In this document: positions 5,700 through 63,909 of the stretch, one piece after another
How the letters are laid out: the number at the start of each line of letters is the position of its first letter
Numbering within the stretch: the stretch's first letter is position 1
NCBI RefSeq assembly: GCF_018977255.1
Contig: NW_024704755.1
Location: forward strand, 13,826,001 to 13,890,000
From: Callorhinchus milii
Lineage: Eukaryota
DNA: 64,000 bases
Reading direction: 5' to 3'
The notes under the pieces: generated by a model
Databases searched by the model: none
What the model was told of the DNA's origin: nothing
Seen by the model: the letters and a program-made list of their open reading frames with translations, nothing else
Translations under genes and position numbers: made by a program

Positions 5700-7140
5700 T
5701 TATCAAATCTTACCTCTCCACCCTCACCTCTTTAAACCGTCGTTCTATTCCAAGACAATCTTGGAGGCCAAGGACAACCCCAGGCTCCTCTTCTCCATCA
5801 CCAACCAACTCCTCCGTTCACCATCTCACACCTCGCCCATCCTCTCCTCCAACGCCAACTGCGAGGTGATGCTGGGCTTCCTCGAAACCAAAGTCGAGAG
5901 GATCCGCTCAGCTGCCTCTGCCCTTCCATCTACTACTCTCTCCCCATCTCCCCCTCACACCCTGGCCCCTACCCATCCCTCCCTCTGCACTTTCGAACCT
6001 GTCTCCCACTCCTCTCTCACTACCACTATAACCAGCATGAAACCGACCAACTGCTCCCTCGACCCCAACCTTACACCTCTTCTTATCTCCCAGTTCCACC
6101 TCGCTGCCCCTCTATTCACATCATAAACCTCTCCCTGTCGACTGGCACAGTTTCCACCCCTTTAAAAATGTCCATCATCACTCCTCTCCCAAAAAAACCC
6201 TCCCGAGAACCAGTCCTGCTCTCAAACTACCACTCCATCTCCAACTTCCCTTTCCTTTCCAAGGTCTTGGAACGAGTCGTTGCTTCTCAGCTTCGCTCCC
6301 TCTTCTCCCGCCACTCCCTTCACGAACTCTTCCAATCGGCTTTCTGTGCCGCGAACAGAACAGAAACAGCCCTGGTCAAAGTGACAAATGACATTTTGTC
6401 CATCTGTGACCAGGGCTCCCTCTACTTCCTCCCTCTTGGGGACATCATACGCAGACATGGAGTCAACTTCCATATCTATGCGGATGATACCCAACACCTA
6501 TCTCTCTGCCTCCTCCCTTGACTCCAGGACCACTGCTGTCCTGACAGAATGTCTGTCACACATCAAGTGCCTTCACACCTCAGGAGCTAGCTCCCCATCC
6601 CCCAGAGGATCAAATTCAAGATCCTCATCCTCACCTACAAGGCCATTCACGGCCTTGCTCCCTCCTACCTCTCCGACCTACTATCCCCCTACTTAGCTGC
6701 CCGTACCCTCCGTTCCTCTGGCTCCGATCTGCTCCACATCCCCCACCCTAACCGCCCTACTATCGATGGCCGGGCCTTCAGCCTCTCAGCCCCTAGGCTC
6801 TGGAACTCCATCCCCCAGTGCCTTCGCCGCTTCCTCCCTTTCCTCCTTCAAAGCCTTTCTCTTCGACCGTGCCTTCAGCTCCCCTCTCGACTCTCTACCC
6901 ACTCCTTGCTCCCTCCCTTCCCTCCCCTCATCCTGACGATTTCTGGAACTCCATCTCACAGTCGCTCCGCCTCGCCCCCTCCCTTGCCTCCTTCAAGATC
7001 AGTCTCAAGACCCTCCTCTTTGACCATGCCTCCTTCCCCTCCTGCCCTCCACCCTCCCTGAATCCGACCCCCACCTCAGGTCCGAAACACTGATTGTCCT
7101 GCACCTTGGGACGTCCTCCCAACGTGAAAGGCCGATATAC
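5700..7140 (+). mobile_element. Internally deleted, degenerate L2
   Basis: Collinear with parts of the long L2 but missing the RT core and other blocks; ends in an L2 tail. Confidence 0.85.
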
Positions 7141-13152: not shown

Positions 13153-14786
13153 TATCGGCGGTCAGGCTTTCCTTCGGCCTTTCAGCCCCCACCCTCTGGA
13201 ATTCCATCCGCCTCGCCACCTCTCTTGCCTCCTTCAAAGTCCATCACGAGACCTTCCTTTTCAACCGTGCCTTCGATCATCTTCCCTCTTCCGCCCCCCG
13301 TTGCGCTCAATCCCTCTCTGAACCCAACCCACAGCCTGGGTGCTAACCCCTCATTGCCCAGCGTCTTGGAACGTCTTCCTGACGTTAATCGTGCTATACA
13401 AATGCAATTTGTTGTTGTTGTTGTGAAGCTCCTCTGCATTCTATCTGATACCAATAATCCTTCAGTTAAATTGGTTATTCACTTCCTGGTTGTTTGTGAG
13501 ACGTTGATGCATGCAAGTTGGCTGCCGATCTTGCCTACAAATACACTGCAATTACATCTACAGTCATTCTAAACTGGACCATGCTTAACATTTATTGGAT
13601 TGCAGTTACTACCACTGTGGTGTAGTGCAGTGGTTCTAAAAGCTTCCACACCCAGGCAGGATATTGTGTTCATTTCTACTGCAGGCTTTTACAAAATAAT
13701 CATCTAATCTTAAGTGGTAAAAATGAAGGAAACCGAGAAGTGGTTCAGCCCAAGTCAATTTGCCGTGACAATGAGAGAGGTTTTACTTGCCTGACTCCAC
13801 ATGGTTTTGTGCTGTAGTTTCATCACAAGTTGCCCAGATATTAGACTAACCGGTTGGTGGCAGGCAGGTGGGTCGGCTCACTGCTGATATAGTGAGTTAG
13901 GAGAGTGTATATTGCACTGGCACAGAGGGTTTGGAAAATTAAGGAGATAACTTTTTATATTAAAAAAAAGAGGGTCAGAGTTTTCATTAAAATATTCATG
14001 AGTTTCAGAGGCTGAAGCATGGAGCAATAGAGACATGTTTCAGTATATGCAGTCACGCTAGTTGCCAAAGCCCTAAAGGATCGGGTGGTACCAGCTGGAC
14101 AAGCAGCGGGAAAGCTTGCCAGACAGCGATCTCAATGGCAAGCTATGCAGTTTTAGCTGGTCACACTCCAGCAGTTACCCCAACGCACACTTGGGAGTCC
14201 CCAAGCCTTGACTCCTGTCAAACTGCACCTAATACTTTCTGAATTAGGTAAGCGGGACAACTCCCTGACGAGTGCTCATTCCATTCCAACAAGCTATCTC
14301 TGGAATTTCCATGAGGAGGTGGGTTACCACAAAATTACCACATCAGACTGCATAGAGACTGTCCAGCTCTGCCCAGAATCACCATGTTGACCAGAAAATC
14401 GGATTGATCTGGGTCAGGTCACGTCACGGAAAGGTTATGGTTTCCTTTTTCAAAAAGCAAGATCTACCAGCTAAATAATTTCCACACACAACAGCAATCT
14501 AGATTTAACTCCAGATAACATTTCCGTTTTAAACTTCAGACGAAACCTTGTTTTAAGCACAGTCTTTGCTTGACATATTGACATATTTGCGAGCCCCACC
14601 AGCCGCCCCGCAGTCCCGACCCAAAAAAAAATGACCCGCAGCCGGTGTCACAAACCGCAGTGAGATGTCTGATGTCTGAACACGCTATAAGGCACGTTAC
14701 CTATAAAGTCTTTGTCTTTCACACCTACCTCTAGTTTGCTCCCAGTTCCATGAAGAGATGGATTGAGTTAAGGATCTTTACTCAGA

Positions 14787-14841
14787 ATGTTTGCTGTGAG
14801 GACACTTCTTTTGCTTTTGAGGCTGGGAATGATTTTCACAG
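14787..14841 (+). CDS. VJ-C1 receptor exon 1, signal peptide
   Basis: [18 protein letters not shown]+G|gtgcgt; hydrophobic core, phase 1 as in typical IgSF leaders. Confidence 0.75.
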
Positions 14842-17800
14842 GTGCGTGTGATCACATTGCAGAAAGGTCATTTACCCAAACTGGAAAGTTTCTGTGCAAT
14901 AATTTTTGGAGTTGTGCTTCACTTTGATTGTCCTTTTCGGTTTTCACGTGTCCGCAGATTACTTGCTGTGGAGCGCGTTTAACTCACATTTATTTACTGT
15001 ATTATTTATTGTTACTTTCCTTTCCTCCAGTTACCTGGAAACCTCTCCAGAACGTGAAACAGGTTCCTGAGCGGCTGAGAAAGACTAAAGGCACAAATGC
15101 GACCTTTTATTGCTCTTTCTCGCTTGTCAAAGATAAATCCCAAATTGATGTCCAATGGTGGAGGGAGGGAGAAGAGGAATTATTGAACAGAAGGGATACC
15201 AGGAATCGATTTGAAGTTGTGAATCTAGGTACTGCCGTCTTTCACCTCCTAAATTTGAGTGTCTCGGACTCAGGACGCTATTACTGCAAAGTCAGATACG
15301 AGCTTCAAATCGGGAATGGAAATGGCACATGGCTGGATGTAAGCGGTGAGTGCCTCCAACGCTGGGAATCCACAGAATAAATAAATAATCCTGGTACTTG
15401 ATACAGCATCAATAAAGTGTAGCGACTGTGCATTTGTAGGCTAGACAGCCACTTTGCATCCGGCAATGTCCCACGACAGACACAATGAGAATTACAAATC
15501 TTATCTGCATCCCAAAACTGTGTTAGATATTACACGTGGTGTTGGACACTATTTTAGCTCATTAATATTGGTCAATTTTCTACCTTAATAATCCTTACAT
15601 TTGGTATCGTGCCTTTCACATTAAAAGGACATATGTGGCAGCTAATTGAATGCACAGTAGTGTCCCACAAATAGCCATGAAGTAAATGAAAAGTAAAAGT
15701 AATTTTTTTATTTGGTAGAATTGTTGGCCAGGACACAAGGAGAAACTTAATGCCTCGCAATTGCAGCAATATTTGTAAAGGTGAGGATAAATCTATTTGT
15801 GGCCACAGTTGTTCTGTGCATTAAAAATATTCAATCCTATACATTAGGAAGTATTTTATTATCAAAAAGCCTAAATAAACAGAAATAAAATAACAGAGAG
15901 CAATCAAACTGTATATCCAGTGAAGTGAGTAAGTTACAATTAAAATAATCTTAATAATAATCATTGCATTTGATATTGTGCCTTAACACATCATTGAGAC
16001 GTCTCAAAGCGCTTCAAATTATAACGTTAAAGGCTAGAAAAGTACGAATTCTTCTAACTCCAGAGGTTCATCACTTTGACCATACGTTCAGCCGCCCTTC
16101 CTTCCCTTTCCTTCCTCAATTTCTCCCCCTCCAGCTCAGGTTTGCGAAACAGTTGTGTGAGGCTCTTTGATACATCCTCCCAATGTGAAATGCACTACAG
16201 AATATACATGTAAATTATAATAATAATCATAATAATAATAACTCTTGCATGTGATATAGCGCGTTATCAAGTCTTCGAGACGTCTCAAAGCGCTGCACAG
16301 AATATACTGTAAGTGAATTGACTGTGTATTTTGTGGGCGAAACCCAGCAGCCAATTGCGCATAGCAGTTTCCCACAAACAGTCGTGGATTGAAGTGACCA
16401 AATTATTATTTATTTATTGTTTAAAAAAAGTTGATGGGATTATTGTGGTTCACTTAAATTGTAGCCAAAATTTGAAGAATAAGAAGTCTGTAAAAACAGA
16501 AAACAAAAAGCTCAACATCTCTTGGCATCTTTCCCACTTGGGGCAAAGGTTCAGTTCAGTTAAAAACATCGTTAAAGCTCTTGTCCATCGTGCAAAACGG
16601 AGAAAGTTTGCAAATCGTTCACTTTGATTTAAGATTTTTGTCATTTTACAAAGAAAAACTTGGCTGATACCTAAGGATGCTTCTACACCTTTTGCGTCCG
16701 TCTTTTTAAAACATGTTTTGCATCAAAAGCCATTGAACTGAGGTCCTGTAGAGTATTGGTTAGAGCACTCGCCTCACAAGCGAGAGGACCCGGGTCAGGT
16801 TTGATTCCCGAGCGGGCGAAACCTTAGGCAAGTTTCCTTACTCCACACATCTCTATTTACATTGCAGTAAGTAGGAACTCGGACGTTAGTTGAAGGGATT
16901 ATGACTGTAGGCAGATCGCTTTCCGGGGTTATAATCCCTTCAAAAAAATAATAATTTGGTCGCTCAATCTACGACTGTTTGTGGGACACTGCTGTGCGTA
17001 ATTGGCTGCCATGGTTCACCCACAAAAATATATAGTCAATTGACTTCACAGTATATTCTGTGCAGGGCTTTGAGACATCTGAACAACTTGATAAAGCGTT
17101 ACATTAAATGCAAGGATTATCATCTTGAAGTCAAGTTCTAAATTGTGCTAAATTCTGAAAACCTAGGAATTATATATTTTGTAGGAGAGAGGTGGATGAA
17201 GAAGAGATATAAACTTTTCATATACCATACAAATTTACATTTTTAATAGCGACCTTCACATTCGGAGGACGTCGCAAGGCACTTGGCAGTCCTGATTTAT
17301 AGTAATAATAATAATAATTCTTGCATTTGACATAGAGCCTTACCACGTCATTGAGATGTCTCAAAGTGCTTCATAGAATATATTGTAGAGTTGAAAATGA
17401 CTCTGTATGTTGCGGGTGAAACGCGACAGCTAGTTGCACACAAACAGGGAATTAGCACATATAATCAGAGAACGATTCAAATTGTAGCCAGACCAAAGCA
17501 GAGAGTGACATGTTAATGTGTAACTTCTATTAATCAATTACAATTAAAATAAATATAAATTTCTATTGTATATTAAGTGTTTATGTCTCTTCTTCATCTA
17601 TTAATCAGTAACATTAATAATAAGCAGCGAGACATTGCGGTGAATTGCCGTTGATGGAAACAAGTCTGTCCACGCTGCATTGCCAGCATGTTTTGCTTTA
17701 ATTTCACACAATAATAATCCTTGCATTTGATATAGAGCCTTATCACATCATTGAGACTTCTCAAAGCGCTTCACAGGATATGCAGGACTGTATATTTTGT

Positions 17801-20800
17801 GCGCGAAATACATTCCAGTTATTCCTTTTATTCCATTTTATCTGTCCGGTCAGTGCCTGCTACCAGACAGCATCTCATAAAAAAAATTGTCAATTTTGTA
17901 CTCTTTTTTTAAGACATATTGAACTGAAAGTTAGTAATCTTAGTAATCCTCTTGGGCGAGGAGGCAACGACACTTGTGGAGTCTGAACCATTCGTTGCCG
18001 AGTTCTAGAAGGTCAACAGAGATATTTGTACTAGATTGTATTGTGTTATAACAATACATTTGGGCATTGAGTTGCCCTGGGACAGTGCTCAGTGAACACA
18101 CACAGCCCGGGCTGTGGGTTTCAATTAAAAGATAGGTCGAGGAAACCAATAAAACATCTGAATGTTTAAACACGAAGGAGCTTGCAGGGCAGATCGGGTG
18201 TGGAGTCACGTTTCTCAGAAATCTCTCAAAGAAACAATGACCTACAGAAGTTAGCAGAGAACCAGGGAGAGAGAGAGAGAGAGAGAGAGCTCAGGTGCTC
18301 TCAGTTACTGTGAAATCCATCGCTATGCTTTTGGAACACCATCCAAATACTCTCCCTTTCTCTTGCCCAGTGCTTCCCTATTCTATCTGCTGAGCTAAAA
18401 TAACATTTTCTTCCCTTATCTGCTCTCAAGTTCCCCCAGCTCCTTTGAAGATCACCTCCATCCCGCTTGAAAGGAGTTCATCTGTGTTTCTGAAGCTGGT
18501 GTGTAAGACCCATGGGTTTTACCCAGACGAGCTGCAACTCAGCTGGTTTGTGAATGGCTCAGAGATTGCGACGGGGATCAGCACTGATGTACAGCCGAGT
18601 GAACAGGGGCTCTTTCAAGTGTCCAGCTCCATGGAAGAGAAAAGCGCTGTGCAGCCGGGGACAGTTTATACCTGTCAAGTCTCCCACCCCTCTCTCCAGA
18701 CTCCAGCCATCTCTAATTACATTTTCACCTCTCCAGGTAATGGTTAGACGTTTCTCAATGCTGCTCCCATGATTATTGGAAGGTTGTGTCCCACACGCAC
18801 ATCATTGAACACCCTTCACCCCAACACACACACACACACCAACACTCATCCGCACACCACTGCCCCCCTCCCTCCCCCCCTCAAACATACCCTGCATGAG
18901 GGGAGCTATATAAATGCGAGTTGTTGTCGTTGTCCAGCATCTTGGGACGTTCTTCCGATGTGAAAGGCGTTATATAAATGAAATGTGTTATGAATCTGGG
19001 TTTAACGTTTTGAAGACAAAATGATTCTCAATTCGAGCTGTGTAAACGATGAAAACGTTTTCATCAATCCTACCTGAGGAGTCAGAAGAACCGTGGAGTA
19101 TTTGGCATGATCATGTGTGGAGTTAGGTGACAATGTGGTTTTATATCAATCTTTTTTTTTGTTATTTCCAGGCATTTTTTTCATGATTCACGGTGAGGGA
19201 AACAATGAAGTTGATTCCCTTGTGTTAGCGGGACGGTCTAGGAAGGACTAGATAATCTAGTCCTGAAGTGAAATTCGGAGGTCACATAGAACTAGATAAA
19301 ATGGTGTGGGGGATGGATAAAGTAAACCTAGAACAGGTTCAGATATTGATAAGGCAGGATGGAGGATAATAATCTTTGCAATTGATCTCGCGCCTTATCA
19401 CATCGTTGAGACATCTCAAAGCGCTTCATTGAATATATTGTAAAGCGTATATTTTGTGGGCAGAATGAATCTTCAGGAAAAGAGAGAATATTAGAGGGAA
19501 ATAAACAGCAAACTGAATTTTGTACTTGTTTTGTATATATTGCAGAAAATGCCAACCATTTACCCTGGTGGCTCTACGCTTCTATAGGAACTGGAGCTTT
19601 CCTTCTATTACTTCCAATTAGCATACTGATACTCTGTAGGTGCTGTATATTCAAAGGTAAGGATGCCTGGTTTTGTTTTGTGATATGAATTGAACCTAGG
19701 TCAGTCAATATTTCAAGCGTATAAGGTCGGACGCCATAATTAACTTTGAAGTCGTCAATTGAGTTGAAAGCAATCTGGGTTTATCAGATGTATTGTTGGC
19801 CATGAACCTAGAACCTTCTGACTCAGAGGTGAGAGTCCTACCAACTGAGCCAGGCTCACACCGAAAAATAAAATTGATGGCAGATCCAAATTAACCTGCA
19901 CCTCAAGTATGTCATGGAAACAATTGATTTTTCTGTGGTACTTCTGTTTATTGTGACATTTCCAGTTCGCATTAAACTTTGAAATGAACGCCTCGTTTAG
20001 TCCAACAAAATAGTTAGAAAATCACACCAAAGTTAAAGATATTGAAATGTGTGATAACTGTGGTTTTTTTATACAAGATGTTAAATACTATTGAGATAAA
20101 CCCAGAACAATACTTCCAGGTATCCCAAGTCCTAGAGACAGGCCTAAGACGACATCATTTAGGACTGTGAAGGGAAACTTTAGGATAGACATAGAATCAT
20201 ATCATAAAATCATAGAATATACAGCGCAGAAGGAGGCTATTCGGCCCATCGTGTCTTTGCCGGCTCTTTGAAAAGAGCTATCCAATTCAATCCCACTCCC
20301 CCACTCTCTCCCCATAGCCCTGCAAACTTGTCCTTCCCAAATAATTATCTACTTCGCTCTTAAAAGTTGTTATCAAATCGGCTTCCCCCACACTTTCAGG
20401 CATCAGGATTCATTCCTTTAATCAGTCAACATCTGAAATGGGTCATCAGGAAGAATGACTTAGCCAGGAGGTGGACTCAATTTAAGAAACAGGTTGATGG
20501 TATAATGGGAATATGATAGGGTGGGTATTCTGGAAGGAAGGTCCTTCTTTACTCAAACCTATTTGGGATCATGTGCTAAATGTAAGGCCTCCTTTAATGC
20601 AACAGCAAATGTATCCATTTAAATATTTCCACCAGAAAAGCCATGTTCAAGATTCTTAAAACAGATATGTTCATCAGGCAAGTACAAATATGATCTTGAA
20701 TGAGTGCAGTAGTTAATTAGCATGGTTAGCAGTAGTTACTGTTGTGACTGTGCTAATTTCCGAGCACAATGATTTAAGGATGAGATCAGATGGGCCAAAG

Positions 20801-23114
20801 GGCTTATCCGGTGATGTAACCCAGCTTCTGTGTCATTCTGCTCACCAGGCAGAGAGATAACACCAGTGGAAACAGATGTTCAGGAAATGCAGGTACGTTG
20901 ACAAAAATCCCAGTTATCAGATATTCCAAGGTTTGTTGAAAATATTTGTTTTTAAACTGAAGTTTCCTGAACAGTGAGAGATAGAAAGACTCAAAACTTT
21001 ACTGAAATGGACGATTCATGTTTGAATGTATTACTTTTCTTTGGTTGTCAGAAGTGGTTGCGAAACTTTTAAATTAGTTTTCTTTTACAATTACTGAAGC
21101 AATGGCAACAACTAAGCAATAAAACCAGCACACATTACGTGCAGCATAAAGTTTCCAGTACTTGTCCTTGTCACATACATCCTGGAAAATAAAAACCTAA
21201 ATGGGGTAGAGGAGCAAAGGGACCTTGGGGTATACATACACAGTTTCACTAAAAGTAGCAACGCAGGTTAATAAGGTCATAAAAAAGCAAACCAGGCATT
21301 GGTGTTTATTTCTAGAGGGATAGAAATGAAAAGCAGGGAAGTTATGGTAAACTGCTACAGAACCTTGGTTACACCACACTTAGAATACTGGTTGCAGTTC
21401 TGGTCCCCACATTATAGACGGGATGTAGAGGGATTGGAGAGGGTGCAAAGGAGATTCACAAGGATAATCCCAGAACTGAGAGGTTCTACCTATCAGGAAA
21501 GGTTGAACAGCTTGGACTCTTTTCTCTTGAAAAGAGGAGGGTAAGGGGTGATCTAATAGAGGTCTTTAAAATGATGACAGGTTTTGATAGGGTAGACATA
21601 GGGAAAATGTTTCCACTTGTGGGGGAGACCCAAACCAGGGCCCATCAATATAAAATAGTCACAAATACATCAAACAGGGAAGTTAGAAGAAATTTCTTCA
21701 CACAGAGAGCAGTGGGAATGTGGAACATGCTACCACAAGGAGCTGTTGAGGCAAATAGCACAGATGTATTTAAGGGAAAGCTAAACAGGTACATGAGGGA
21801 GAAAGGAATAGAAGGTTATGCTTGAAGGCTTAGTTGAGGAAGGGCAGGAGGAGGCTCATGTGGAGCATAAATACCAGCATAGACTAGTTAGGCCGAATGG
21901 TCTTTTTCTGTGCTGTATATTCTAATATAATGTATTCAATGTAAATGGGGCAAGCTCCACTCCCAAAGCAAACTTGCGCCGCTTCCAATTCCTACACAAC
22001 TTATCTCAGCAAGCGAGTGATTGCAAATCAATATTAAATTTGTGTTGGGCAGTTTTGACCTGCATGCAAACTCACACCCACTCAAAAATGGATTGACACT
22101 ACCCATACCTCAGCTCACACTTACCACTTATGCCCAGGAGAGAACCCGGATTCAGACGGAGGTTTCAGAGGGAAAGGAAGGTTTTATGCCACACAATTCC
22201 CACAATTTATTCTTAAGGTTTTAGTTCATTGAAACTCACATCTACCTCTCTTTCTTTCTCCCTACGTTTTTGTTTTTCTTTGTGTTGCCTTTATTTGGAA
22301 TCAGTTTTCCCCAGTGTTACTTCCGCCCGAAACTCTGGAACTCTCTCCCTCAATTCCTCGTTCTTGCCCCCACCCCCACTCCCACCTTCAAATCCACCGA
22401 AAGACCTTCCTTTTTGATCCCGCTTACGGTCACCTACCCCTTCCCTCTCCCCCGGCTCGGTCTCAGACCCCGCCACTCTTAAGCGCTCCAGGACGCTACC
22501 CCAAGTGAAGGGTGCTATATAACCCCAAGTTATTGTTGTTGTTGCTACATCTCTTTTAACGGAACAGCGAAGCCGAGACTGTGGGTTCAACAACTGTAAC
22601 AGACTGTGAGAAAGATCAGGAGTTAATAAGGGTGAAAACATGACTTTCTTTAAATTACCATCAAGTTTTGACCCCAATCAGCGCAGTTACAATCACGAAT
22701 CAGTCAGAAAATCAGAAGTAGGACTATATTGTATTTGAAGATTTGGATATTCAGGGCTAATCTGCAGCATTTCTTAAGAAATACACAGTTATCACATTTC
22801 TAAATCTTTGAATTAGAAATTTGATAATGACACGTTTTCTATTTTTAAAAAAATCCTGTTTAAGAAATATTGCAAATTAGACAATAATGATGTAAAAAAT
22901 CAGAGTCTTGTCAATCGGAAGTTTTCCTGCTGTTTCCACGCAGCTCATGCAGAGACCAGCCAGTGAGGGGATGGCATACGCCACCTTGGATTTCAACAAC
23001 TCCAGGAAATGCCCAGATCCCCAACGCAAGCAGAAAACAACACAGCCACACGCAGCACCCAGGGTTCAAGCCAGAAACACAGAGATCACCTACGCCACAA
23101 CCAGATTCAAGTAG
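14787..23114 (+). CDS. Non-rearranging Ig-superfamily receptor: leader, VJ domain, C1 domain, TM and ITIM-like tail (PRARP/VJC1-like); 6 exons, 333 aa
   Basis: Exons 14787-14841, 15031-15345, 18431-18736, 19546-19656, 20849-20892 and 22944-23114 join in frame (1002 nt including TAG), all with GT-AG boundaries. V: [25 protein letters not shown]1: [27 protein letters not shown]. Tail: MAYATL and ITYATT. Confidence 0.85.
15031..15345 (+). CDS. VJ-C1 receptor exon 2, V-set Ig domain with germline J-like strand
   Basis: tttcctccag|..[56 protein letters not shown]|gtgagt; 315 nt, phase 1/1. Confidence 0.92.
16740..17115 (+). mobile_element. tRNA-derived SINE (long variant)
   Basis: gtcctgtagagtattggttagagcactcgcc head through the tail atcaaatgcaaggattat-like end. 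Confidence 0.85.
18268..18290 (+). repeat. (GA)n microsatellite
   Basis: gagagagagagagagagagagag. Confidence 0.85.
18431..18736 (+). CDS. VJ-C1 receptor exon 3, C1-set Ig domain
   Basis: ctctcaag|[52 protein letters not shown]..|gtaatg; 306 nt, phase 1/1. Confidence 0.92.
19546..19656 (+). CDS. VJ-C1 receptor exon 4, transmembrane segment
   Basis: tgcag|[37 protein letters not shown]|gtaagg; no charged residue within the TM. Confidence 0.85.
20185..20400 (-). mobile_element. CR1 3' end fragment
   Basis: catagaatcat..atagaatatacagcgcagaaggaggctattcggccc is an antisense CR1 tail. Confidence 0.7.
20849..20892 (+). CDS. VJ-C1 receptor exon 5, cytoplasmic
   Basis: ctcaccag|[15 protein letters not shown]|gtacgt; phase 1 to 0. 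Confidence 0.65.
21195..21940 (+). mobile_element. CR1 3' portion in the last intron of the VJ-C1 gene
   Basis: [34 protein letters not shown]. Confidence 0.88.
22944..23114 (+). CDS. VJ-C1 receptor exon 6, ITIM-like tail and stop
   Basis: tttccacgcag|[32 protein letters not shown]. Confidence 0.8.
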   Translation, partial: LMQRPASEGMAYATLDFNNSRKCPDPQRKQKTTQPHAAPRVQARNTEITYATTRFK

Positions 23115-23571
23115 CAAGAGCTGGGTATCCAGAATCCTTCTGAAAAGTGACCGGCAAAACATCTGATTGTTTTCAATGCTCGAAAAGTACAGTCAGACTA
23201 TATTGTAATCTTTTCCATTGTTAATGTTTCTGGAAGATTATCTCCATTATCACAGATATGCTAAATAAGGACATTTTTATTTTAACTGCTGGAACTCCTA
23301 TCCTACTCCAAACCCTCCGTCTTGCCCCCTTTTTGCCCATCTTTAAATCACACCTGAAGACTTTCCCTCTTCGGCTATGCTTAAGGTTGCCCTCCCTTTT
23401 CTCCCCAGCACTACGCTATTGTTAAGCGCTTTCTGATGCTGACCCACGTGAAGGGCACTTATAAATAAATGCAAGTTATTTTTACATAGAATTGCACAGA
23501 ATTGATATCACCCAAACAGGCCATCACCTGCGAAATGCTTTGAAATCTCTCGATGACACAATAAGAGTGCT

Positions 23572-26500
23572 CCCCAGTCGGGGAGCGGCGGCAGGACAGC
23601 GCGGGGAGGAGCCTGGGCCTACTGACCAGGTACTTAAACTCGACGCCGGAGCGAGTTCAGCCCCGGGGGGGGGGGGGGGGGGGGGGGAGAGCGGGGGAAC
23701 TGCGACGTCATAGATTAGTTTTCAGGTACGTGCGCACGCACACAAAAAAAAAAAAACTCTGCGCCCCCCCCCCCCCCCCAGGGCTCACATCAGAGCCCAC
23801 TATGGTCCTGTTGGGTTTGCTGCCCCAATCTACGGGATAATGCCATCCACCTGACCGCTCGCTCCCGGTCCCCGCGTGCGCACTATGGCTGCCGCTTTGA
23901 CCCCCCTCCCTCCCTCCTCCCTCCTCTCTACCCCCAAACCCTCCCCCCTCTGCATCTCTCCCGCTCTCTCCTCCTCTCTCTCCGTCCCTCTCGTCTTCTA
24001 TCCCCACTTGACCCTCCCACAACCTCCCTCTGCTCCAGCCTGGGAATCCTCCGCCGGGCTCACCGTGGCACTCGGCGTTGGCTGTCCAGCAGCAGCCACA
24101 CCGACTGCCCCATTCCCCACCATACTCGCCAGCCACCCCGGACACAGACCCGGGGAGTCAACCTCTCCTCCCTCATCCCCATTCCCCCACCCCTGCCTCA
24201 CAACCTGGACCCCCTCCCCTCCCACACACCCTTCTGTCAACCGCTCCCTCCACATCGGACTGCAAAATGTCCGCTCCCTCTGCAACAAGGCCCTGGTCAT
24301 CAACGATCTCATCCTTGATGAGAACGTTGATATCATGGCCTTAACAGAAACCTGGCTCACCCCAGGCGACACCTTCCCCCTCACGGAGGCCACACCACCC
24401 GGCTACACCTCCCACCACATCCCCCGCCCCAACCGCCGTGGCGGTGGTGTTGCCCTTATCTCAAGGACACCACTTGCCCTATCCCCCTACTCCACTGGCT
24501 CTTTCCCCTCCTTTGAGCACCTCACCCTCTCCCACCCCTCATTCCTCTCCCTTAAAATCCTCCTCCTCTACCGGCCCCCTAAAACCTCTCCCACCTTCAT
24601 CTCTGACATTTCAACACTCCTCACATCTCTTTGCCTCTGCTCCGATCGCCTCATCATCCTGGGCGACTTTAACCTACACTTCACCCCCTCCTGCTCCATC
24701 TCCACAGACTTCTCTTCCCTGCTCTCCTCACTCAACCTCTCCTTACACATAAACTCCCCCACTCACAGTCACGGCCACCCACTCGATTTGGTGATCACCC
24801 GGGGCCTCAGTGTCTCGGATGTCACTATTACCGACAAGGCCATCTCTGACCACCACTTCATCTCCTTCACCACCTCCACCCCCCTCCCCACCTCCACCAG
24901 ACCCACCACCATCTTCTACCGCCCTTGGAAGAAGTTACCCCCACAATCCCTAACCGATGCCTTGGAGTCCTCTGAACTCCTCTCCCTCTGGCCTTCAACC
25001 CTCACCGACCCCTCTTCTCCTCTCTCCCTCCTCCACAATACCCTCTCCTCCACACTCGATACTCTTGCCCCCATCACTTCCCGCACTGTCTCCTACTCCC
25101 GCTCCTCCCCCTGGTACACCACCCACCTCCGCTCACTGAAAAGCCAGGTGCGGGCTGCTGAACGCACCTGTGTCAAATCTGGCCTAACGGTCCACCGACA
25201 AATCTGGCTGGACCTCCTCAAAATTTACCGCTCCACTCTAGCCTCGGCCAAGTCGTCCTTCTACTCCAGGATAATCCTGGAGGCGAAGAACAACCCCAGG
25301 CTACTGTTTTCCACCACAACCCGACTCCTCCGTCCCCCCCGCCACCCCGCGCAGGTCATCTCCTCCAACCTTCACTGCGAGGAGATGCTGGATTTCCTTG
25401 AATCCAAGATCAAGGGAATCCGCTCCGCGGTCACTTCCCCTCCAACTTCCACCCACCACCCACCCCTTCCCTCCCACACTCCGACTCCTACCCATCCTCC
25501 CCTACACACCTTCGTACCCGTTTCCCCACCCTCTGTCACTGAACTCATCCTATCCCTAAAACCAACCACCTGCTCCCTTGACCCCATCCCCACTCCACTC
25601 CTTATCTCCCAGCTCCACTTTCTTGCCCCACATATCACTGACATCATCAACCTGTCCCTCTCCTCTGGCTCTGTCCCCATTCCATTAAAAACTGCCATCA
25701 TCACGCCCACCCTGAAAAAACCCTCCCTTGATGCGTCGCAGCTATCAAGCTACCGGCCCATCTCCAACCTCCCCTTTCTCTCCAAGGTCTTGGAAAGAGT
25801 TGTCGCCTCCCAACTGCGCTCTTTCCTTTCCACCCATTCTCTTTTCGAACCCCTTCAGTCAGGTTTCCGTGCTGCCCATAGCACAGAAACTGCCCTGGTC
25901 AAGGTCACCAATGATATCCTGACCATCTGTGACCAGGGCTCCCTCTGTCTCCTCGTCCTCCTCGACCTATCGGCAGCATTCGATACGGTCGACCACGCTA
26001 TCCTACTCCACCGCTTGTCCTCCCACCTCAACCTTCAAGGCACTGTCCTTGAATGGTTTAGGTCGTACCTTTCTCACCGTCTTCACTTTGTCTCGACGAA
26101 TGGCTTCTCCTCCACCCCCCGTACTGTCTCATGTGGTGTCCCTCAGGGCTCTGTCCTCGGTCCCCTCCTCTTCACCCTCTATATGCTCCCCCTCGGTGAC
26201 ATCATCCGCAGACATGGAGTTAACTTCCACATGTATGCGGATGACACCCAACTCTACCTTTCCTCCTCTACTCTCAACTCCACGACCACCGATGTCCTGA
26301 CAGCTGCCTGTCCGACATCGAGTCCTGGACGAGAGACAACTTTCTTCAGCTCAACGTGCGAAAAACCGAGGCCCTCCTGATTGGCTCACGTCAGCGCCTC
26401 CGCACCTCAGGCGCTGACACCATCAGCATCCAAGGCTGCACTCTCCACCTCTCAAAGCCAGTCAGGAACCTCGGCGTTTTGTTCGACCCTGAGCTGTCCT

Positions 26501-27270
26501 TTCTCCCTCACATCCGCACCACAACTGGCACCGCCTTCCATCACCTCCGGAACATCGCCAGACTACGGCACTACCTCACCCCTCACGCTGCTGAAACCCT
26601 GGTTCACGCCTTTGTCACCTCAAGGCTGGACTATGGGAACTCTCTCCTCGCCGGCCTTCCCGCCACCTCCCTCCACAAGCTGCAGGTCATTCAGAACTCT
26701 GCAGCTCGTGTACTGTCCCGCACCAGACTTCGGGACCACATCACTCCCACCCTCGCTCGCCTCCACTGGCTCCCCATCCCCCAGAGGATTGATTTCAAGA
26801 TCCTCATCCTCACCTACAAGGCCATTCACGGCCTTGCTCCCTCCTACCTCTCCAACCTACTATCCCCCTACCTACCTGCCCGTACCCTCCGTTCCTCTGG
26901 CTCCGGTCTGCTCCACGTCCCCCGCCCCAACCGCCCTACCATCGGTGGTCGGGCCTTCAGCCTCTCAGCCCCGAGGCTCTGGAACTCCATCCCCCAGTGC
27001 CTTCGCCGCTTCCTCCCTTTCCTCCTTCAAGGCCGGTCTCAAAACCTTTCTCTTTGACCGTGCCTTCAGCTCCCCTCTCGACTCTCTTCCCCCTCCTCGC
27101 TCCCTCCCCTCACCCTGACCATTTGCCCCCTCCTCGCTCCCTCCCTTCCCTCCCCTCACCCTGACCATTTCCCCCCTGCTCGGGTCATGACCCAACTGTG
27201 CAGCGCCTTGGGACGTCCTCCCGACGTGAAAGGCGCTTTATAAATGGAATCTTGTTGTTGTTGTTGTTGT
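23572..27270 (+). mobile_element. Near-intact L2-clade LINE (APE endonuclease and reverse transcriptase), 3.7 kb
   Basis: ORF 23876-26380 carries the APE motifs (QNVRSL, ETWL, GDFN, GHPLDL, SDH) and RT motifs ([17 protein letters not shown]). It continues after a 1-nt frameshift near 26303 into ORF 26356-27057. The 3' end has a stem-loop and a (TTG)n tail. Confidence 0.95.
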
Positions 27271-27800: not shown

Positions 27801-29646
27801 TTGTTTCTTTGCTCCTCTGAGGTTTATTCTAAGGTAGGAACACTTCTTTATTCCTCCTGTCCAAGAAATGTTCAATAAAAGTTTAATAAGTGAATGTCAA
27901 ATACATGATCAACCTTCACAACGACAATAGTCTGCCTAATCCACCCATCATGAAGAATTGGGACTTTTACCCAAGCTCCAAAACCAACTTAAATGGGTAC
28001 AATTTAAGCAAATCTACATTTCCACTCAATTAATATCAGTCACAAAGACGCTTCCTGTGTCAGAATAGAATGTATTTGGGGAAACTGGGTGAAGCAATGA
28101 GCTAGAAAACATATCTTTAGCTCCAGAACCCGGTTGGAGGTGTGGTTTGCGTGCACATTTGAAGCCTCTGGATAGTAATGTTTCATAACTTCTGCACCGA
28201 TCAATGCAGTTCCCTTTACTTATCAGTACTGGAATTCACAATGTCACTGCGTGACATTACTTAACAACTGGGTGAAGAGGAACCTCATGGATCCGGAACT
28301 AAGATGCAATTGACTACGTTGTTAATGCCAGACTTATTAAATGTCCCTTTACACAAAATCATCTAAAAGCCAATCATCCAGTTCAGTATTATTGGGAGAA
28401 ATATACAGTGTTCTGTTGAAGAAAATCCCAGCTATGCAGATGGACTTTAAAACACTATTGACACTATTTGAAAAGAAAAGGAAGTTTTTTGACTAACATC
28501 TTCATTGGTCTAACTAGGTATTCGCCTGTAGTTGTTTAAAGAACAAACCTTGCTGGCCAAATGCAGTTCCCCTTTCTATTTTTTTGTTTGGTTAGTTTGG
28601 TTGTGTCTAACACCTGCAGAAATGCATCACTATGCTAAAGAGTAGCCAACCAGTTTCATGCATCCCACCTGTATATTGGAAATTCCCAAGATATTTGTTG
28701 GAATGAAATGCACATTCTCTCCATGGAGTAATGCATCCAACTTACCTGATTGTGGAAAGTATAAAGCACAGGCTGGCAAGAGCCAAATGGCCCCTAAGTC
28801 ATGGCATTTGAAAGTAATCATAGCATTTGTAAAACACTTTGAGAAGTGTCACAGAAGTAGTTTAAAGACAAAGTTTTTTAAAAAAACACTGCGTAATACC
28901 TGTTAAAACTGGTTTAATATTTTCATAGTAATAGAATATTACAGAACAGAAGGAGGCCGTTTGTCCCATTGTGCCTGTGTCGGATACCCCATCAGTCCCA
29001 CTCCCACGCTCTTACCCCATATCCTTAAAATGTTATGGCAACTGGTGCTGAGCATACCCTGAAATTAAAGTTTCTGCACAATAGCACTACTGAGTGTTCA
29101 ATCAGACATTCAGAGATTACAACTCTATTGCACAACAACATGAAGGTTGCTTAACCTCTCACTGGCACTTCACTCTTTCCCACATCACTCAGCAAGCCCC
29201 AAGTGAAACGGTTAATAAGCGATTACCTCGCAACGCTTTAGCCACTGAATCATTTCCACTCTTTCACATTAATTCATACACTGGTAATATCATTTAAATG
29301 ACAGGGACTTACAGGAGGAAGAAGCTTGGAATGATCACAAACAATTTTTTTAAAAAAAAAGTTCATACTCCACAATGCCAGTTAATTTGGCTGATTAATG
29401 AGAAAAATAATCACAAAATGTGAGGCTGAGTCACAGATCTTATGTCAATGAGACATGAAGAGAGGCCACAGAAGCTAAACCCTCTTCACAATGTGAAAAA
29501 AATCTTTTTAAGGAGGGAGAGAGAAACAATTCAAAAATGTTTTAATTGTGGAGGGAATCAGTAAGAAAAAACGGCCGGGGAGAGACTCTATTTAAAAGAA
29601 TGGTGCGTGTGTATAATAAAGAGCTCGAGCCTGTCATACAATTTGC

Positions 29647-29652
29647 TTTATT
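29647..29652 (-). terminator. Candidate polyadenylation signal of RBR copy 1
   Basis: AATAAA on the minus strand ~620 nt after the stop; the equivalent site is near 36727 in copy 2. Confidence 0.4.
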
Positions 29653-30271
29653 GAGAAAAAGAAAATAACCAAAGCATTACAGTCTATCAAAGTGTTCCTT
29701 TTGCACAATACGAGTTGCGTGCATTTCTCTCACGATTGAGGAAGGTTAGCAAGCCAGACAAAGCTGATCTTACACTCTGAGATGTACAGCAAGAGCAGTT
29801 CTAGACAGGCAATATCTGTCTTCATAAACAAAGTGGCCACACACCTGCACGATTGCAAGGCCACCATGTTAGTGTACAGTTCATTCCCTGAACAAGGGAT
29901 ATCCACTTACAGGCTATACACATCCTATGAGGTTCACGAGAGAAGTTTGGATGAAGAAGGTCCTTCGCTCATTTACAGGCTTGGCTGGGAATCTCACAGA
30001 GGTCTCTATTATCTACAGCTATGAGGCTGTTGAGATGCTCTACAAGGTTGGGAATATCAGTTCTGTTGCAAAATTTAAGAAACATGCAAAAAACATTTCT
30101 CAGGAGTGATTAGCTGACACTTGGTGTTGGGTCTGTTCAAGACCTACCACCACCTGCAAGTCCCCATTTATGGGACTTGGTTTCACTGGAATAGACAAAC
30201 TCCTACAGTAAAAGCTGAGACAACCTCCACCGGCTGTCAAGCAACCAGCTCCCAAGTCGTCAGCAAACCAT

Positions 30272-33200
30272 TCAGATTTCTCCAGGTTGATGACTTGGCT
30301 GCTGAGGTCTATCAGCTCTGGTAACTCTGTGCATTTGTAACTGAGCCCATCTGTTTTCCATTTCTAACTGAGTTTGCAGTACGAGAAGATAATCTTCATC
30401 GTCTAACTGCTCTCTTTTCTCGTAAACTTTATTGCCCGATACCTTTTGGCGTTCAGCTATAGAACAGCCCTGTAAACCTCCTGTGTGATTTTCATCCAGG
30501 CCAAGGCACCGAAAACAGAATGTATAATTGCAGTTGGGGCAGTCAATATTGCTGCAGCCTTCTAGGCAGTGTTGTGTTAACGCTTCACAGTTAGGGCAGG
30601 CTCGCACTTTTGGGCACCCGTGCACAACAGTATTCTGTACGTTGATCGTGGGACAGCCTTGGAGCAGGGCTGTAAACGTGCAGGCACCATTACCGCATGA
30701 GTTGCTCTGCACATCAGGATTCCTCCATTCCCTCAGGCAGTCAAAGCAAAACACAAAGACTTTCTTTTTTGTCTCAGAGCACGGCAGACACTCCGCAGAC
30801 AGCTTCTCCAGGTCCACTCTCTGTACATACAGACCACATTCTGGACACTGAGGACAAAGCATACCATTAGTCACACTATTGTCCCCTTCGGTTGAGCGCA
30901 ATATTGATTCCTCAACAATTCCCTGCAGCTTTGGAGAATTCAGGCTCCCTAGCTACCTTGAAGGCAATCATTTTGTGCACAACAAGTTCCCACAAGTGAC
31001 CATGAGGAAAGCTATTCAACAAGTTATCCAGTAAATAGCTGGGCTTTCCAGACCAAGAAGCTACCATGTTCATTCCTCGCCCTGTGCTGCAATCCAATCT
31101 CAATCAAGACGGCATTGAAGAGAACTACAGTCTGTCTCAGAATCCTGGATTCAAATAAGGGAGATTGGCTGCTAGGTTTTGCCCACAAAATACAGTCAAT
31201 TCACTTTGCAGTGTATCATGTGAAGCACTTTGAGGCATCTCAACAACATGATAAGGCACTATGTGCAAGGATTATTATTATGATGGTCAATCGAAATTCA
31301 CTCTGCTGATTCCTTTTGGGACAGCATTTGTAGATAATAATAATCCTTGCATTTCATATAGTGCCTGATCACATCTTCGAGATGTCTCAAAGCACTTCAC
31401 AGAATATACTGTAAAGTGAATTAACTGTATATTTTTGGGGCAAAAAGCAGCAGCCAATTGGACACAGCAATGTCCACAAACAGTCATGGACTGACTGATC
31501 AAATTATTATTATAATTATTTTTGGAATGAATTATTACCCCCGGAAAAGCGATCCAACAATCGTCTAACAACCGGGTTCCTACTTATTGCTTGGTAAACA
31601 GAGGTGTGTGGAGTAAGGAAACTTGCCCAATGTTTCACCCTGCCAGAAATCAAACCAGGTCTCTCGCTTGCGAGGCGAGTGTTCTAATCACTGAGCTACA
31701 TGAATCCTAGGACTAGAGATAGCATGAAGACATGGATTACACTCGGCTGCAATTCTGTGATTATTCAAACAGAAGGCAGTTTCTCCCAATGATTTGGACA
31801 ATCTTCCAGATAACAGTGCTCATTTGTTGCACCTTGATGTGTGTGCACAATCTTGTGTTTTGTCTACAAATAGATTTGTCTGCAATAATCTGTGAAACTT
31901 CAAAACATTCACAAGGGCTGTGTATCAAATGCAAGGATTAACTTGAGTGAGGGACAAGAAGTAAAACGGATTATCAGCCGAACAGATCAACATCTGTCAC
32001 TTCATTTTCACTGGCTATTTGATGAGGATGTGAATACAAGATAATTGATTATATTCAAGCAGCATGAGGTGGACAGACCTGTGGCAGGTAAGTAGAGAGA
32101 CAGAGAGATGCACACACAAACCGAGGCAATCAGAGAGACAGAGAGCAAGAGAGATACACACATAGAATCCACCATAGTCCAGTCCGAATGTAAAAATATG
32201 GTAATATCAAAAGCAAATATCAGGAAACAGCCTGTTTGACTAGAGTCAGTTAGAAGGCTCAAAGAGCTGCCGACCTCAGATAACAAGCTGGTGCATTCTC
32301 AGATAACCCTGCTAGGAACAACCCATCATTGTGAGAAGCAAGTAGTCTCAAGGTCTGGGAAAGAAAGGTGCGTAGAGATTAGGGAGACCGGGGGAAGATG
32401 GCCACGGGAACAGGAAAGAATGCTAGAATGCAAGGGATACCATCTCCAATGGGTACAGGCCAATTAAAGGCAGCTACAGGAGAGAGATAAGGGAAGACAA
32501 GGGTTGGGGCATTTACAATGGGCCACATTGTTTTTGGTTAATTAAATCAAAGAAACGAGCTAAGATAAAACAACACTATACAGGAATGATGAGCTAAAGC
32601 CATTCCTGATAAGAGTGTGATCACATTAAAGGGCACAAATCAAGAGTTAGGAAGTACAGGACACTGACCAGGAAAGATCTGGTTATTGGCCAGACACTGC
32701 TAGAGAGGTATAAGTATAGGAGTGAAATAGTCAAGAGAGAACGAGACTCAGCGGAGGTAGACAGGGGAACAGCCCTGCAGTCACTCGAACGAGACGACAC
32801 TCTGTAGCAGGTTGAGCTGCAGAGACGTTGGGAGGAACCATCCCGCTTGTGTCTTGAGCCGATCCGCTGATCAGTTCAAGAGACAGTATCTTACGATACT
32901 GGAGCAGGAGAAATGGGACAGAGGGCAGAGGAACGCGATTGAGAACCAGAGAAAAGAGGAGAAAGTGGACAGAGGGCAGAGGAACTCAATTGAGATCCAT
33001 AAAAANGGGAACGGCATAGATCACCCGGCAATTTGAATTTGGCAATTCCAATGTAACGGAATTGTTACAGGAATCCAAGGACTAGAGATAGCATGAAGAC
33101 ATGGATTACACTCGGCTGCAATTCTGTGATTATTCAAACAGAAGGCAGTTTCTCCCAATGATTTGGACAATCTTGCATCCTGAACTTTACCTTTTTGAAA

Positions 33201-44419: not shown

Positions 44420-63909
<19,490 letters not shown>

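Follow-up and report, generated by a model that had tools for sequence, protein, structure and literature searches.

The locus analysed here, in a window of Callorhinchus milii DNA (the whole stretch under analysis, 64,000 nucleotides), is a genuine elephant-shark gene that is intact and encodes a receptor of the immune type on the cell surface. At somewhat better than even chances, we read it as an intact, non-rearranging V-C1 receptor of the inhibitory type, presumably signalling as such, that belongs to a cartilaginous-fish family with SIRP-alpha-type tails. The gene is better described as a SIRP-alpha-like inhibitory receptor than as a demonstrated relic of the antigen receptors.

The coding sequence of 1002 nucleotides yields 333 amino acids plus a stop codon. 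The six exons proposed in the initial annotation are confirmed in their positions and are spliced in frame into a type I membrane protein; all internal borders are AG/GT, and the intron phases are 1, 1, 1, 1, 0. The protein consists of a split leader, a V-like domain to which a J-like G strand is fused, a C1-set domain, a stalk, an uncharged transmembrane (TM) helix and a tail of 72 residues. The exons are as follows.

14787..14841, + strand: exon 1, carrying the start codon and the greater part of the signal peptide (plus 1 nt), ending at a GT donor in phase 1 (split leader)
15031..15345, + strand: exon 2, end of the leader and a single-exon V-like (VJ) Ig domain that includes the J-like G strand
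18431..18736, + strand: exon 3, C1-set Ig domain (CKTHGFYP ...), seen by PF07654, the family C1 HMM and the structural model
19546..19656, + strand: exon 4, short stalk, uncharged TM helix and Cys-rich juxtamembrane CRCC
20849..20892, + strand: exon 5, cytoplasmic, 44 nt, with a matching small exon in Heterodontus (P0002 residues 264–278)
22944..23114, + strand: exon 6, cytoplasmic tail with Y289 and Y327 (EITYATTRF) and the stop codon

In the AlphaFold2 model, the signal peptide of exon 1 forms a helix at residues 2–17, and the helix of exon 4 spans residues 233–260. The leader junction motif (F/S)TVT(W/G) is common to the window gene and its orthologues, exon 2 carries N-glycosylation sites at N41, N93 and N116, and the exon 4 motifs PWW(I/L)Y and C-x-x-C are kept in P0002, P0004, P0017 and P0032. 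The juxtamembrane CRCC is a possible palmitoylation site. No RSS-like heptamer-spacer-nonamer was found in positions 14000–24000 on either strand, and there are no CACAGTG or CACTGTG heptamers within 14701–15700. Since the J-like strand lies inside the V exon and the RSS are absent, the gene is germline-joined and non-rearranging, and the initial description of a complete VJ-C1-TM gene holds. No further Ig exon was found in the window. The neighbours seen are an IBR-domain gene and MBTPS1, the latter next door, as had been expected.

The C domain is a bona fide C1-set domain, as first proposed: Pfam C1-set (PF07654) matches residues 146–212 at 2e-16 (60.5 bits; the cut-off is 21), and the AlphaFold2 model shows seven strands and a short CD strand. 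The N-terminal domain matches the Pfam ig, I-set and V-set models, I-set scoring slightly above V-set (6e-7, 108 of 109 model positions). Its modelled strands are A, A', B, C, D, E, F and G. Because the stretch between strands C and D is short (42 residues, W39 to C81 in domain numbering) and strand C'' is absent from the model, the domain is predicted to be a truncated V or I-type fold. Hence the V-set match and the J-like strand of the originally described V domain stand, whereas its fold has to be revised. The related-family HMMs give 123 bits for the V exon and 139 bits for the C1 exon, and both ectodomain Ig domains are modelled with pLDDT above 93 (93–98 for the V-like one). These scores, together with the same six-exon layout at the horn-shark (Heterodontus) locus L003, place the gene structure far beyond chance.

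Full-length six-exon orthologues with 44–45% identity are present in Heterodontus and Heptranchias. The clade of the window gene with P0002 and P0004 has support of 99/92 in the ectodomain tree and 99/98 in the C1 tree, and on these trees the window gene appears as the Callorhinchus orthologue of the shark gene. The related family has 117 representatives at E<=1e-30, found in this analysis only in cartilaginous fish (sharks, rays); all 30-odd named members with the VC architecture come from chondrichthyans, each species having them on a single chromosome. The window gene is a divergent branch of this large multigene family. Its members, all V-C1-TM, have either a long multi-tyrosine (ITIM-rich) tail, which is the inhibitory-type form, or a short tail with R/K in the TM, which is the activating-type form. 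In the sister orthogroup (P0017, P0032, P0047) the tail is basic and contains no tyrosine, hence tail function is labile in this branch. The NCBI names of family members are SIRP-alpha-like, Ig-lambda-like, tapasin-related-like and NCR3LG1-like, two of which had been foreseen as likely labels, and the databases hold the family only under automatic, often wrong names. Thus the gene does not stand alone as an oddity: the large family of cartilaginous fish to which it belongs has tails specifically like that of SIRP-alpha. This membership lowers the novelty, and comes close to the placement in a known family such as SIRP that the initial annotation had itself named as removing it.

The family tail HMM scores 40.3 bits against the human SIRP-alpha tail over the whole length, with the four tyrosines aligned in order. 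The next best tails are CD33 (13.2 bits) and PECAM1 (10.8 bits), while CEACAM1, LILRB1, BTLA, KIR, LAIR1 and PD-1 all score at most 10 bits; among the reference tails and domains used, B7-H6 is confirmed exactly and SIRP-alpha in parts. Shuffling the residues of the SIRP-alpha tail gives 9.4 bits at most, and permutations that keep the motifs have a mean of 15.9 and a maximum of 39.7 bits. The alignment suggests homology of layout between the family tails and the four-tyrosine SIRP-alpha tail. The window tail scores 34.2 bits against the same HMM, keeps motifs 1 and 3 of the four, and appears to be a shortened tail of the SIRP-alpha type. As noted at the outset, the TM is uncharged, and all quoted motifs are present, Y289 (MAYATL) and Y327 (ITYATT) having 37 residues between them. 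The tyrosine pairs of SIRP-alpha are about 24–26 positions apart, compared with 38 for Y289–Y327. The Y289 motif, MAYTAV and MVYTAI in the sharks, approaches the ITIM consensus but has Met at −2; the Y327 motif is non-canonical, with Thr or Pro at +3.

SHP recruitment through one ITIM-like motif (that of Y289) and one non-canonical motif is plausible. The V-like domain would bind a cell-surface or microbial ligand, Src-family kinases would then phosphorylate Y289 and possibly Y327, and SH2-domain phosphatases of the SHP-1 / SHP-2 type would be recruited and dampen activation of the receptor-carrying cell, as with SIRP-alpha in myeloid cells. With only two of the four SIRP-type tyrosines left, the second of them in a non-canonical motif, the receptor probably signals more weakly than its paralogues, or through different partners.

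Judged by its sequence, the ectodomain is not that of SIRP proper, having a single C1 and a V domain apart from the true SIRP V. The V domains of true SIRP (human, Lerista) and of Ig/TCR make up a clade with 99/97 support that leaves out the shark family (AU p 0.056); the family V is apart from the Ig/TCR plus SIRP V group in both V trees. In whole-protein phmmer searches against PDB, SIRP-alpha ranks first (7.6e-20) and UrIg2 second (1.9e-19). In the reference panel, the family V HMM scores best with the PD-L1 V domain (41 bits); NKp30 is second (38 bits), which agrees with the NKp30-like G strand pointed out initially, and a grouping of the family with NKp30 is without support in the V trees. 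SIRP-alpha domain 1 has 24 bits, Ig/TCR V domains 18–29 bits and B7-H6 V 15.8 bits. The family C1 falls into a loose group with SIRP and B7-H6-type C domains (90/91 in one tree, 81/78 in another); in the ML tree it does not join the C domains of Ig, TCR, MHC or UrIg2. This weakly suggests an affinity with the SIRP and B7-H6 type.

The B7 layout is likewise a single V plus a single C ectodomain, and the gene might encode a B7-H6 / B7-type V-C ligand read by NKp30-like receptors, its tail serving reverse signalling or trafficking and not classical inhibition. The loose C1 group and the PD-L1 score agree with this, as do the 54.3 bits of the human B7-H6 C domain against the family C1 HMM, equal to the top score, and the name NCR3LG1-like carried by several members. 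However, the B7-H6 V domain has the low score given above and forms a clade with Pogona and Xenopus V-C1xN proteins (96/95) that excludes the shark family. Moreover, Pfam favours C1-set over CD80-like C2-set (3.6e-5) and butyrophilin Ig-C (3e-4), while ITIM tails paired with charged-TM short tails, and the four-tyrosine collinearity with SIRP-alpha, are traits of receptors, not of B7 ligands. We consider the ligand role unlikely.

There is only a slim chance that the gene is a surviving remnant of a pre-RAG antigen-receptor precursor, that is, a VJ-C1 chain specifically related to Ig/TCR (the 'PRARP/VJC1' class). The V(J)-C1-TM architecture is exact, with a split leader and no RSS, and the precursor concept is current in the field via UrIg and UrIg2 (PMC12227049, PMC10751288). 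The Ig lambda C domain is at the top of the C1 HMM scores (54.3 bits), and a clade of the family C1 with Ig light-chain C is not rejected by the AU test (p 0.17). Fab light chains, that is, V-C1, are the best Foldseek matches of the whole model, with TCR and Ig V domains also at the top, but their E-values differ by no more than about sixfold, a flat ranking dominated by the abundance of antibodies in the database. Against such a remnant, the protein has neither a stalk cysteine for an interchain disulfide nor a charged TM residue, its tail is long and contains tyrosines, and the neighbours seen are not MHC or Ig/TCR genes. With the V domain separate and the C1 weakly with SIRP/B7-H6, no result puts the gene closer to Ig/TCR than other IgSF genes that do not rearrange, and the precursor link drawn initially is not borne out.

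The suspected mis-annotation is real: the NCBI model of the gene (P0001) has 214 amino acids, lacks the leader and V, starts with MTYRIPPAPL and is labelled "HLA class II DP beta 1 chain-like". It begins with a separate exon that sits in intron 2 and joins the same C1 acceptor as exon 3.

18237..18249, + strand: alternative start exon, coding for MTYR plus 1 nt (ATGACCTACAGAA, then GT), the NCBI gene start

It is improbable that the V exon is unused or rarely used, the functional product being a short C1-TM-tail protein or the locus drifting toward loss of function: the NCBI pipeline gave only this model, from the internal ATG at 18237, and the tail lacks two of the four family tyrosines, but the reading frames of the leader and V exons are intact and their splice sites canonical, V is conserved to the same degree as C1 (V 48% identity to P0004; C1 44–48% to P0002 / P0004), and the orthologues in two sharks are annotated as full-length V-C1 models. 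Moreover, a C1 domain made from the short model, which lacks a signal peptide, would fail to arrive at the cell surface.

Among known systems, NKp30 (NCR3) resembles the inhibitory-type V-C1 receptor that we favour in its V/I-type domain and similar G strand (GTGNGTRLVV in NKp30). Unlike the window gene, it has no C domain, carries a charged TM residue and is activating. The field counts NKp30 among the VJ genes that do not rearrange (PMC12227049). In elasmobranch UrIg and UrIg2, a split leader and a non-rearranging VJ encoded by one exon precede C1-type domains, three in the secreted UrIg and nine or more in UrIg2; both are linked to the MHC or the Ig/TCR complex (PMC12227049). The window gene shares with them the non-rearranging VJ of cartilaginous fish, the split leader and the C1 type, but it has one C1, an ITIM-type tail and other neighbours, and its C1 does not go with UrIg2 C. 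PMC10751288 cites the chicken PRARP genes (Fu et al. 2019, J Immunol). By their description these are reportedly non-rearranging IgSF genes that, like the window gene, have a J-like segment and an ITIM-type tail, and they are said to differ in having a single V domain without C1. B7-H6 (NCR3LG1) has the same V plus single C, TM and cytoplasmic tail, and its C domain shares hallmarks with the window C1 (GFYP...ITW, GTVY.C.V.H.SL.TP); however, its V is not close, and it is the shark family that pairs ITIM forms with charged-TM forms, as receptors typically do. SIRP-alpha (SHPS-1/PTPNS1) differs in having two C1 domains instead of one and four tail tyrosines instead of two. Like the window gene, it has a non-rearranging V with a J-like G strand followed by C1-set, and is a type I membrane protein; the TM of the inhibitory form is uncharged, while SIRP-beta has a basic TM residue, as do the short-tail members of the shark family.

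The six exons of the receptor gene, when spliced, yield an open frame of 1002 nucleotides, that is, 333 codons and the stop codon TAG.

14787–14841, plus strand, exon 1
15031–15345, plus strand, exon 2
18431–18736, plus strand, exon 3
19546–19656, plus strand, exon 4
20849–20892, plus strand, exon 5
22944–23114, plus strand, exon 6

Every internal splice border has the AG...GT form, and the intron phases are 1,1,1,1,0, the usual pattern of Ig-superfamily genes. The encoded protein has a secreted-pathway leader, two Ig domains with four N-glycosylation sites on the ectodomain, a transmembrane (TM) segment with zero charged residues, and a tail of 72 residues with tyrosines Y289 (GMAYATLDF) and Y327 (EITYATTRF). 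The extracellular cysteines form two intradomain pairs only. Residues 146–212 match the Pfam C1-set domain (PF07654, 2e-16, 60.5 bits at the curated cut-off of 21), and the N-terminal domain matches ig (3.7e-13), I-set (9.5e-9) and V-set (6.1e-7), the last match spanning model positions 1–108 of 109. The G strand of this domain carries the J-type pattern GxGTxLxV; a single exon encodes it together with the remainder of the V-like domain.

A scan for heptamer-12/23-nonamer signals on both strands yielded none in 14000–24000 and only two across the whole window, and neither CACAGTG nor CACTGTG occurs near the V exon. RSS-mediated rearrangement was rejected, as the J-like strand lies in the V exon and 14000–24000 holds no RSS-like site. 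A second C1 or V exon hidden in the introns was rejected as well, since tblastn across the 64-kb window found one C1 exon and no further Ig exon. Over residues 243–329 (exons 4–6, TM and tail), Pfam gives a weak match, below threshold, to the SHP2-interacting transmembrane adaptor SIT (E 0.0047; 17.9 bits vs. the cut-off of 27.6); it fits a tail with tyrosine motifs, but is not significant.

The AlphaFold2 model, built from a 55-sequence family alignment, has a mean pLDDT of 82; within the two Ig domains the values stay above 93, the TM is helical and the tail is disordered. The C domain is modelled with seven strands and a short CD strand, as in C-type domains. The N-terminal domain has strands A, A', B, C, D, E, F and G. 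Since C and D are joined by a one-residue bridge only, there is no C'' strand, and the domain, as far as the model goes, is most aptly described as a V domain in truncated form, or an I-type one, whose G strand is J-like. Foldseek searches with the whole model and with the V domain gave flat rankings of Fab light chains, CD79b, TCR V and NCAM d1, with the SIRP-alpha V at rank 39; this confirms the fold class only, with no discrimination among families. The open frame, the Pfam matches, the lack of RSS-like sites and the model confirm the gene seen in the initial annotation, which had described a non-rearranging VJ-C1 receptor: its exons, domains and tail tyrosines stand, while its "V" has to be read as a truncated V or I-type domain.

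P0001 (P-numbers denote retrieved proteins), the 214-aa NCBI model of this gene in Callorhinchus milii, labelled "HLA class II DP beta 1 chain-like", agrees with the C1-TM-tail part at every residue (100% identity). It starts at an internal ATG.

18237–18249, plus strand, start of the P0001 model (MTYR) inside intron 2, spliced to the same C1 acceptor

Having neither a signal peptide nor a V domain, P0001 is probably truncated. Hence the suspicion that the gene was unannotated or mislabelled was justified, the NCBI model being truncated and bearing an MHC class II name.

Next to the receptor gene, the window holds a tandemly duplicated IBR-domain gene and the 3' portion of MBTPS1. The copies (29372–35500 and 36443–42571) repeat with a period of about 7.07 kb and are 98.9% identical across 6.1 kb or more. 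Both contain a Cys-rich minus-strand ORF (30272–30901; 37360–37974) with an IBR (half-RING) domain, and NCBI annotates a 299-aa IBR product in this region. The duplication could be a recent real event or an assembly artefact. In 39500–64000, seven stop-to-stop ORF pieces match MBTPS1_4th (five, best 2.6e-22) and MBTPS1_3rd (two, best 1.1e-24) in Pfam, so that the site-1 protease gene, with its 3' part, comes next, in agreement with the earlier statement that MBTPS1 adjoins the receptor gene. A motif search of the window found no catalytic S8 motifs of MBTPS1; only the C-terminal domains are present. LINE-type retrotransposon ORFs occur at 5761–7093 (plus strand), 23876–27118 (plus strand) and 48503–49523 (minus strand). 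One of them, of 834 aa, endonuclease- and RT-like and including YADDTQ, lies directly downstream of the receptor gene, where the sequence is rich in GC (0.58 at 24–26 kb) and shows strong C skew. Related fragments are found elsewhere, SINE-like repeats fill the introns of the receptor gene, and single N bases at 33006 and 56169 are both outside it.

A profile search of 1.84 billion representatives retrieved 117 proteins at E<=1e-30. By the family HMMs, V-C1 is the architecture of most matches shorter than 650 aa; the others are one-domain fragments or other multi-Ig proteins. All 30-odd V-C1 members with a retrieved source name come from chimaeras, sharks, skates and rays. Word-index protein searches with the whole protein, the family alignment and the tail reached close chondrichthyan relatives only, and are uninformative on other vertebrates. 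The family V domain is marked by WW(K/R)xGE, DSGxYYC and a G strand of the NGTGSxLxV type, and the C1 domain by VPPTPLKI, FYP..L.L.W and TVYTC.VSH.SLQ.PA. The window gene scores 123 (V) and 139 (C1) bits with the family HMMs and falls inside the family C1 clade. We are confident that both the gene model and this family assignment hold.

Members of the family come in two forms. In the first, the tail is long and contains two to six tyrosine motifs; in the second, it is short and the outer TM carries Arg or Lys (e.g. ISKYAGAVLIF, LIYRSILGIL), as in receptors that associate with adaptors of the DAP12 or FcR-gamma type. From these two forms the family looks like a paired system of inhibitory and activating receptors. 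Short-tailed members with Arg or Lys in the TM include, from other species, P0003, P0014, P0022, P0035, P0037, P0042, P0044 and P0068.

In each species the named V-C1 members map to one chromosome or scaffold; the position of the family protein P0040 on its chromosome was not found. The window gene itself is linked to other members in both Callorhinchus and Heterodontus. In the former, it sits near 13.84 Mb on scaffold MU249845.1, which also carries the paralogue P0154 near 15.64 Mb; a cluster of paralogues lies about 1.8 Mb from the window gene. In the latter, the orthologue (about 70.97 Mb of CM071052.1) and the family member P0005 (about 90.10 Mb) are about 19 Mb apart. Automatic names within the family include SIRP-alpha-like, SIRP-beta-1-like, Ig lambda-1 light chain-like, tapasin-related-like, NCR3LG1-like and HLA-DO beta-like. 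Public protein sets already contain the gene and its family, as automatic predictions only. A literature search, outside which some key papers fell, found no paper describing a shark SIRP-like family.

The orthologue in Heterodontus francisci (P0002, 364 aa) is 44% identical to the window protein over 97% of the length, and the horn-shark locus has the same six exons. The orthologue in Heptranchias perlo (P0004, 347 aa, named "SIRP-alpha-like") has the same architecture. The three form a clade with support 99/92* on the ectodomain and 99/98* on C1 alone. All three have PWW(I/L)Y at the start of the TM and a cluster of juxtamembrane cysteines. The first tyrosine motif, ITIM-like in the window protein, is conserved among them (MAYATL, MAYTAV, MVYTAI), and 38–39 residues downstream follows the second one, xxYAT(T/P). 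The sister group comprises P0017 (Hemiscyllium), P0032 (Hemitrygon) and P0047 (Callorhinchus), whose tails are basic and tyrosine-free; the PWWIY TM is present in P0017 and P0032 and absent in P0047.

The tail HMM was built from 20 family tails and compared with human reference tails. The SIRP-alpha tail scores 40.3 bits over its whole length, with ITYADL, TEYASI, LTYADL and SEYASV aligned in order with lsYAtLdL ... tvYAqvK ... ltYAaLeL ... teYAelq. Other ITIM tails score far lower: CD33 13.2, PECAM1 10.8, CEACAM1 9.9, LILRB1 9.7, BTLA 8.0, KIR3DL1 6.8, LAIR1 6.3 and PD-1 2.0 bits. The maximum over 500 residue shuffles of the SIRP-alpha tail is 9.4 bits, and 500 block permutations that keep the four motifs give a mean of 15.9 and a maximum of 39.7 bits. 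The window tail scores 34.2 bits; it retains motif 1 and a degenerate motif 3, the tyrosine of motif 2 is replaced by His, and motif 4 would fall beyond the stop codon. Judging by these alignments, the family shares the tail module of SIRP-alpha.

Searched against the PDB with phmmer, the whole protein has SIRP-alpha as its best match (7.6e-20); UrIg2 is next (1.9e-19), and antibodies come after these. With profiles of the V and of the C1 alignment, the PDB matches were dominated by multi-domain chains (titin, contactin, antibodies) and provided no discrimination. Per-domain scores were obtained for reference domains that are mostly human; the B7-H6 sequence was verified exactly and that of SIRP-alpha in parts.

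Scores of reference domains with the family HMMs, bits
C1 HMM: Ig lambda C (IGLC2), 54.3
C1 HMM: B7-H6 C, 54.3
C1 HMM: HLA-DR beta-2 (DRB beta-2), 53.1
C1 HMM: SIRP-alpha d3, 52.6
C1 HMM: UrIg2 C1/C3, about 45
C1 HMM: SIRP-alpha d2, 36
V HMM: PD-L1 V, 41
V HMM: NKp30, 38
V HMM: pIgR D1, 30
V HMM: TCR V-alpha, 29
V HMM: SIRP-alpha d1, 24.4
V HMM: other Ig/TCR V, 18–23
V HMM: B7-H6 V, 15.8

Three reference domains tie for first place with the C1 HMM, which explains the conflicting family names given by NCBI. Domain by domain, the pattern is not SIRP-specific.

Separate phylogenies of V and C1, proposed in the initial annotation as a check, recovered the family C1 clade and set V apart, with weak support at the deep nodes (maximum likelihood, LG+C20, about 100 columns). 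The family C1 domains form a 98/98* clade within a weak (81/78) assembly with SIRP d2 and d3, B7-H6-type and PD-L1 C domains, apart from the C domains of Ig, TCR, MHC, beta-2-microglobulin, tapasin and UrIg2. The true SIRP V domains (human and two from one Lerista protein) form a 99/97* clade nested with Ig/TCR V. The shark-family V stands alone, and forcing it to join SIRP V costs 12.9 log-likelihood units (p-AU 0.056). Since the V-C1-C1 feature of SIRP is missing and the V relationship is unsupported, we do not file the window gene as SIRP. Human B7-H6 V and the V domains of Pogona and Xenopus V-C1xN proteins form a 96/95* clade that does not include the shark family; B7-H6 proper was rejected on this ground and on the V score. 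The proteins in question, P0106 (Pogona vitticeps, "SIRP-alpha-like" in NCBI) and P0142 (Xenopus tropicalis), are among the best non-chondrichthyan matches, and their first C domains group with B7-H6 C (91/70).

Most probably, the family works like SIRP-alpha and SIRP-beta. In the window gene, a ligand would be bound by the V-like domain, the tail tyrosines would be phosphorylated, and SHP-type phosphatases would be recruited, resulting in inhibition. Several features weaken this prediction: position -2 of the first tyrosine motif is Met, position +3 of the second one (Y327 in the window protein) is Thr or Pro, the tyrosines are spaced by 38, and the sister group has lost all tail tyrosines. 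SHP-type inhibition by this gene is therefore put forward tentatively, at slightly less than an even chance; the gene model, the family assignment and the inhibition, combined in one reading, stand slightly above it.

Two readings concern the origin of the antigen receptors. UrIg, UrIg2, NKp30 and PRARP are treated as candidates for the antigen-receptor precursor in the literature (PMC12227049, PMC10751288). The window gene might be a relic of this kind, specially close to Ig/TCR, as V(J)-C1-TM with a single C1 is the very architecture postulated for the precursor. We consider this improbable: on the evidence so far the family V stands away from Ig/TCR V, the gene has neither an interchain cysteine nor a charged TM residue, and the IBR-domain gene and MBTPS1 next to it are not MHC or Ig/TCR genes. 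Even less credit goes to the entire family, including the conserved single-copy branch, being a direct descendant of a one-V, one-C1 membrane receptor older than both the SIRP lineage and the rearranging chains. The AU tests on C1 reject neither affinity, with SIRP C (p 0.235) or with Ig light-chain C (p 0.172), and the trees speak neither for nor against such descent. If true, it would add a third class of non-rearranging relics beside UrIg/UrIg2 and NKp30, one that kept a membrane-signalling tail. Because of the postulated architecture, the family deserves inclusion in phylogenies of antigen-receptor origin.

The reading of the gene as a member of a cartilaginous-fish V-C1 receptor family has other consequences. 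Its public annotation is wrong. Together with the inconsistent names within the family, this can distort the numbers of MHC, Ig and B7 genes counted in sharks. Should the shared tail layout be due to common descent, the inhibitory module of SIRP type would be at least as old as the jawed-vertebrate common ancestor. The gene is of use to annotators and in the discussion of how the receptors arose; its mechanism is not a surprise.

Compared with known systems, NKp30 (NCR3) has a single V, no C domain and a basic TM, whereas the window gene has a C1 domain and an uncharged TM, and NKp30 proper was rejected. The Ig and TCR chains have separate RSS-flanked V, (D) and J segments, a membrane-proximal interchain Cys, a charged TM and a very short tail, all absent here. 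The single-exon VJ with a split leader is common to UrIg/UrIg2 and the window gene; however, the former have three or more C1-type domains and MHC or Ig/TCR linkage, and membership was rejected given one C1 and the observed neighbours. Non-rearranging VJ-C1 receptors as a kind have been known since the SIRP-alpha structure 2wng, together with ITIM signalling and paired forms. The SIRP ectodomain is V-C1-C1, while the window gene has a single C1, and its orthologues and nearly all of the family are V-C1; the four-tyrosine ITIM array of SIRP-alpha is present in the family consensus, and the window gene has motifs 1 and 3 of it.
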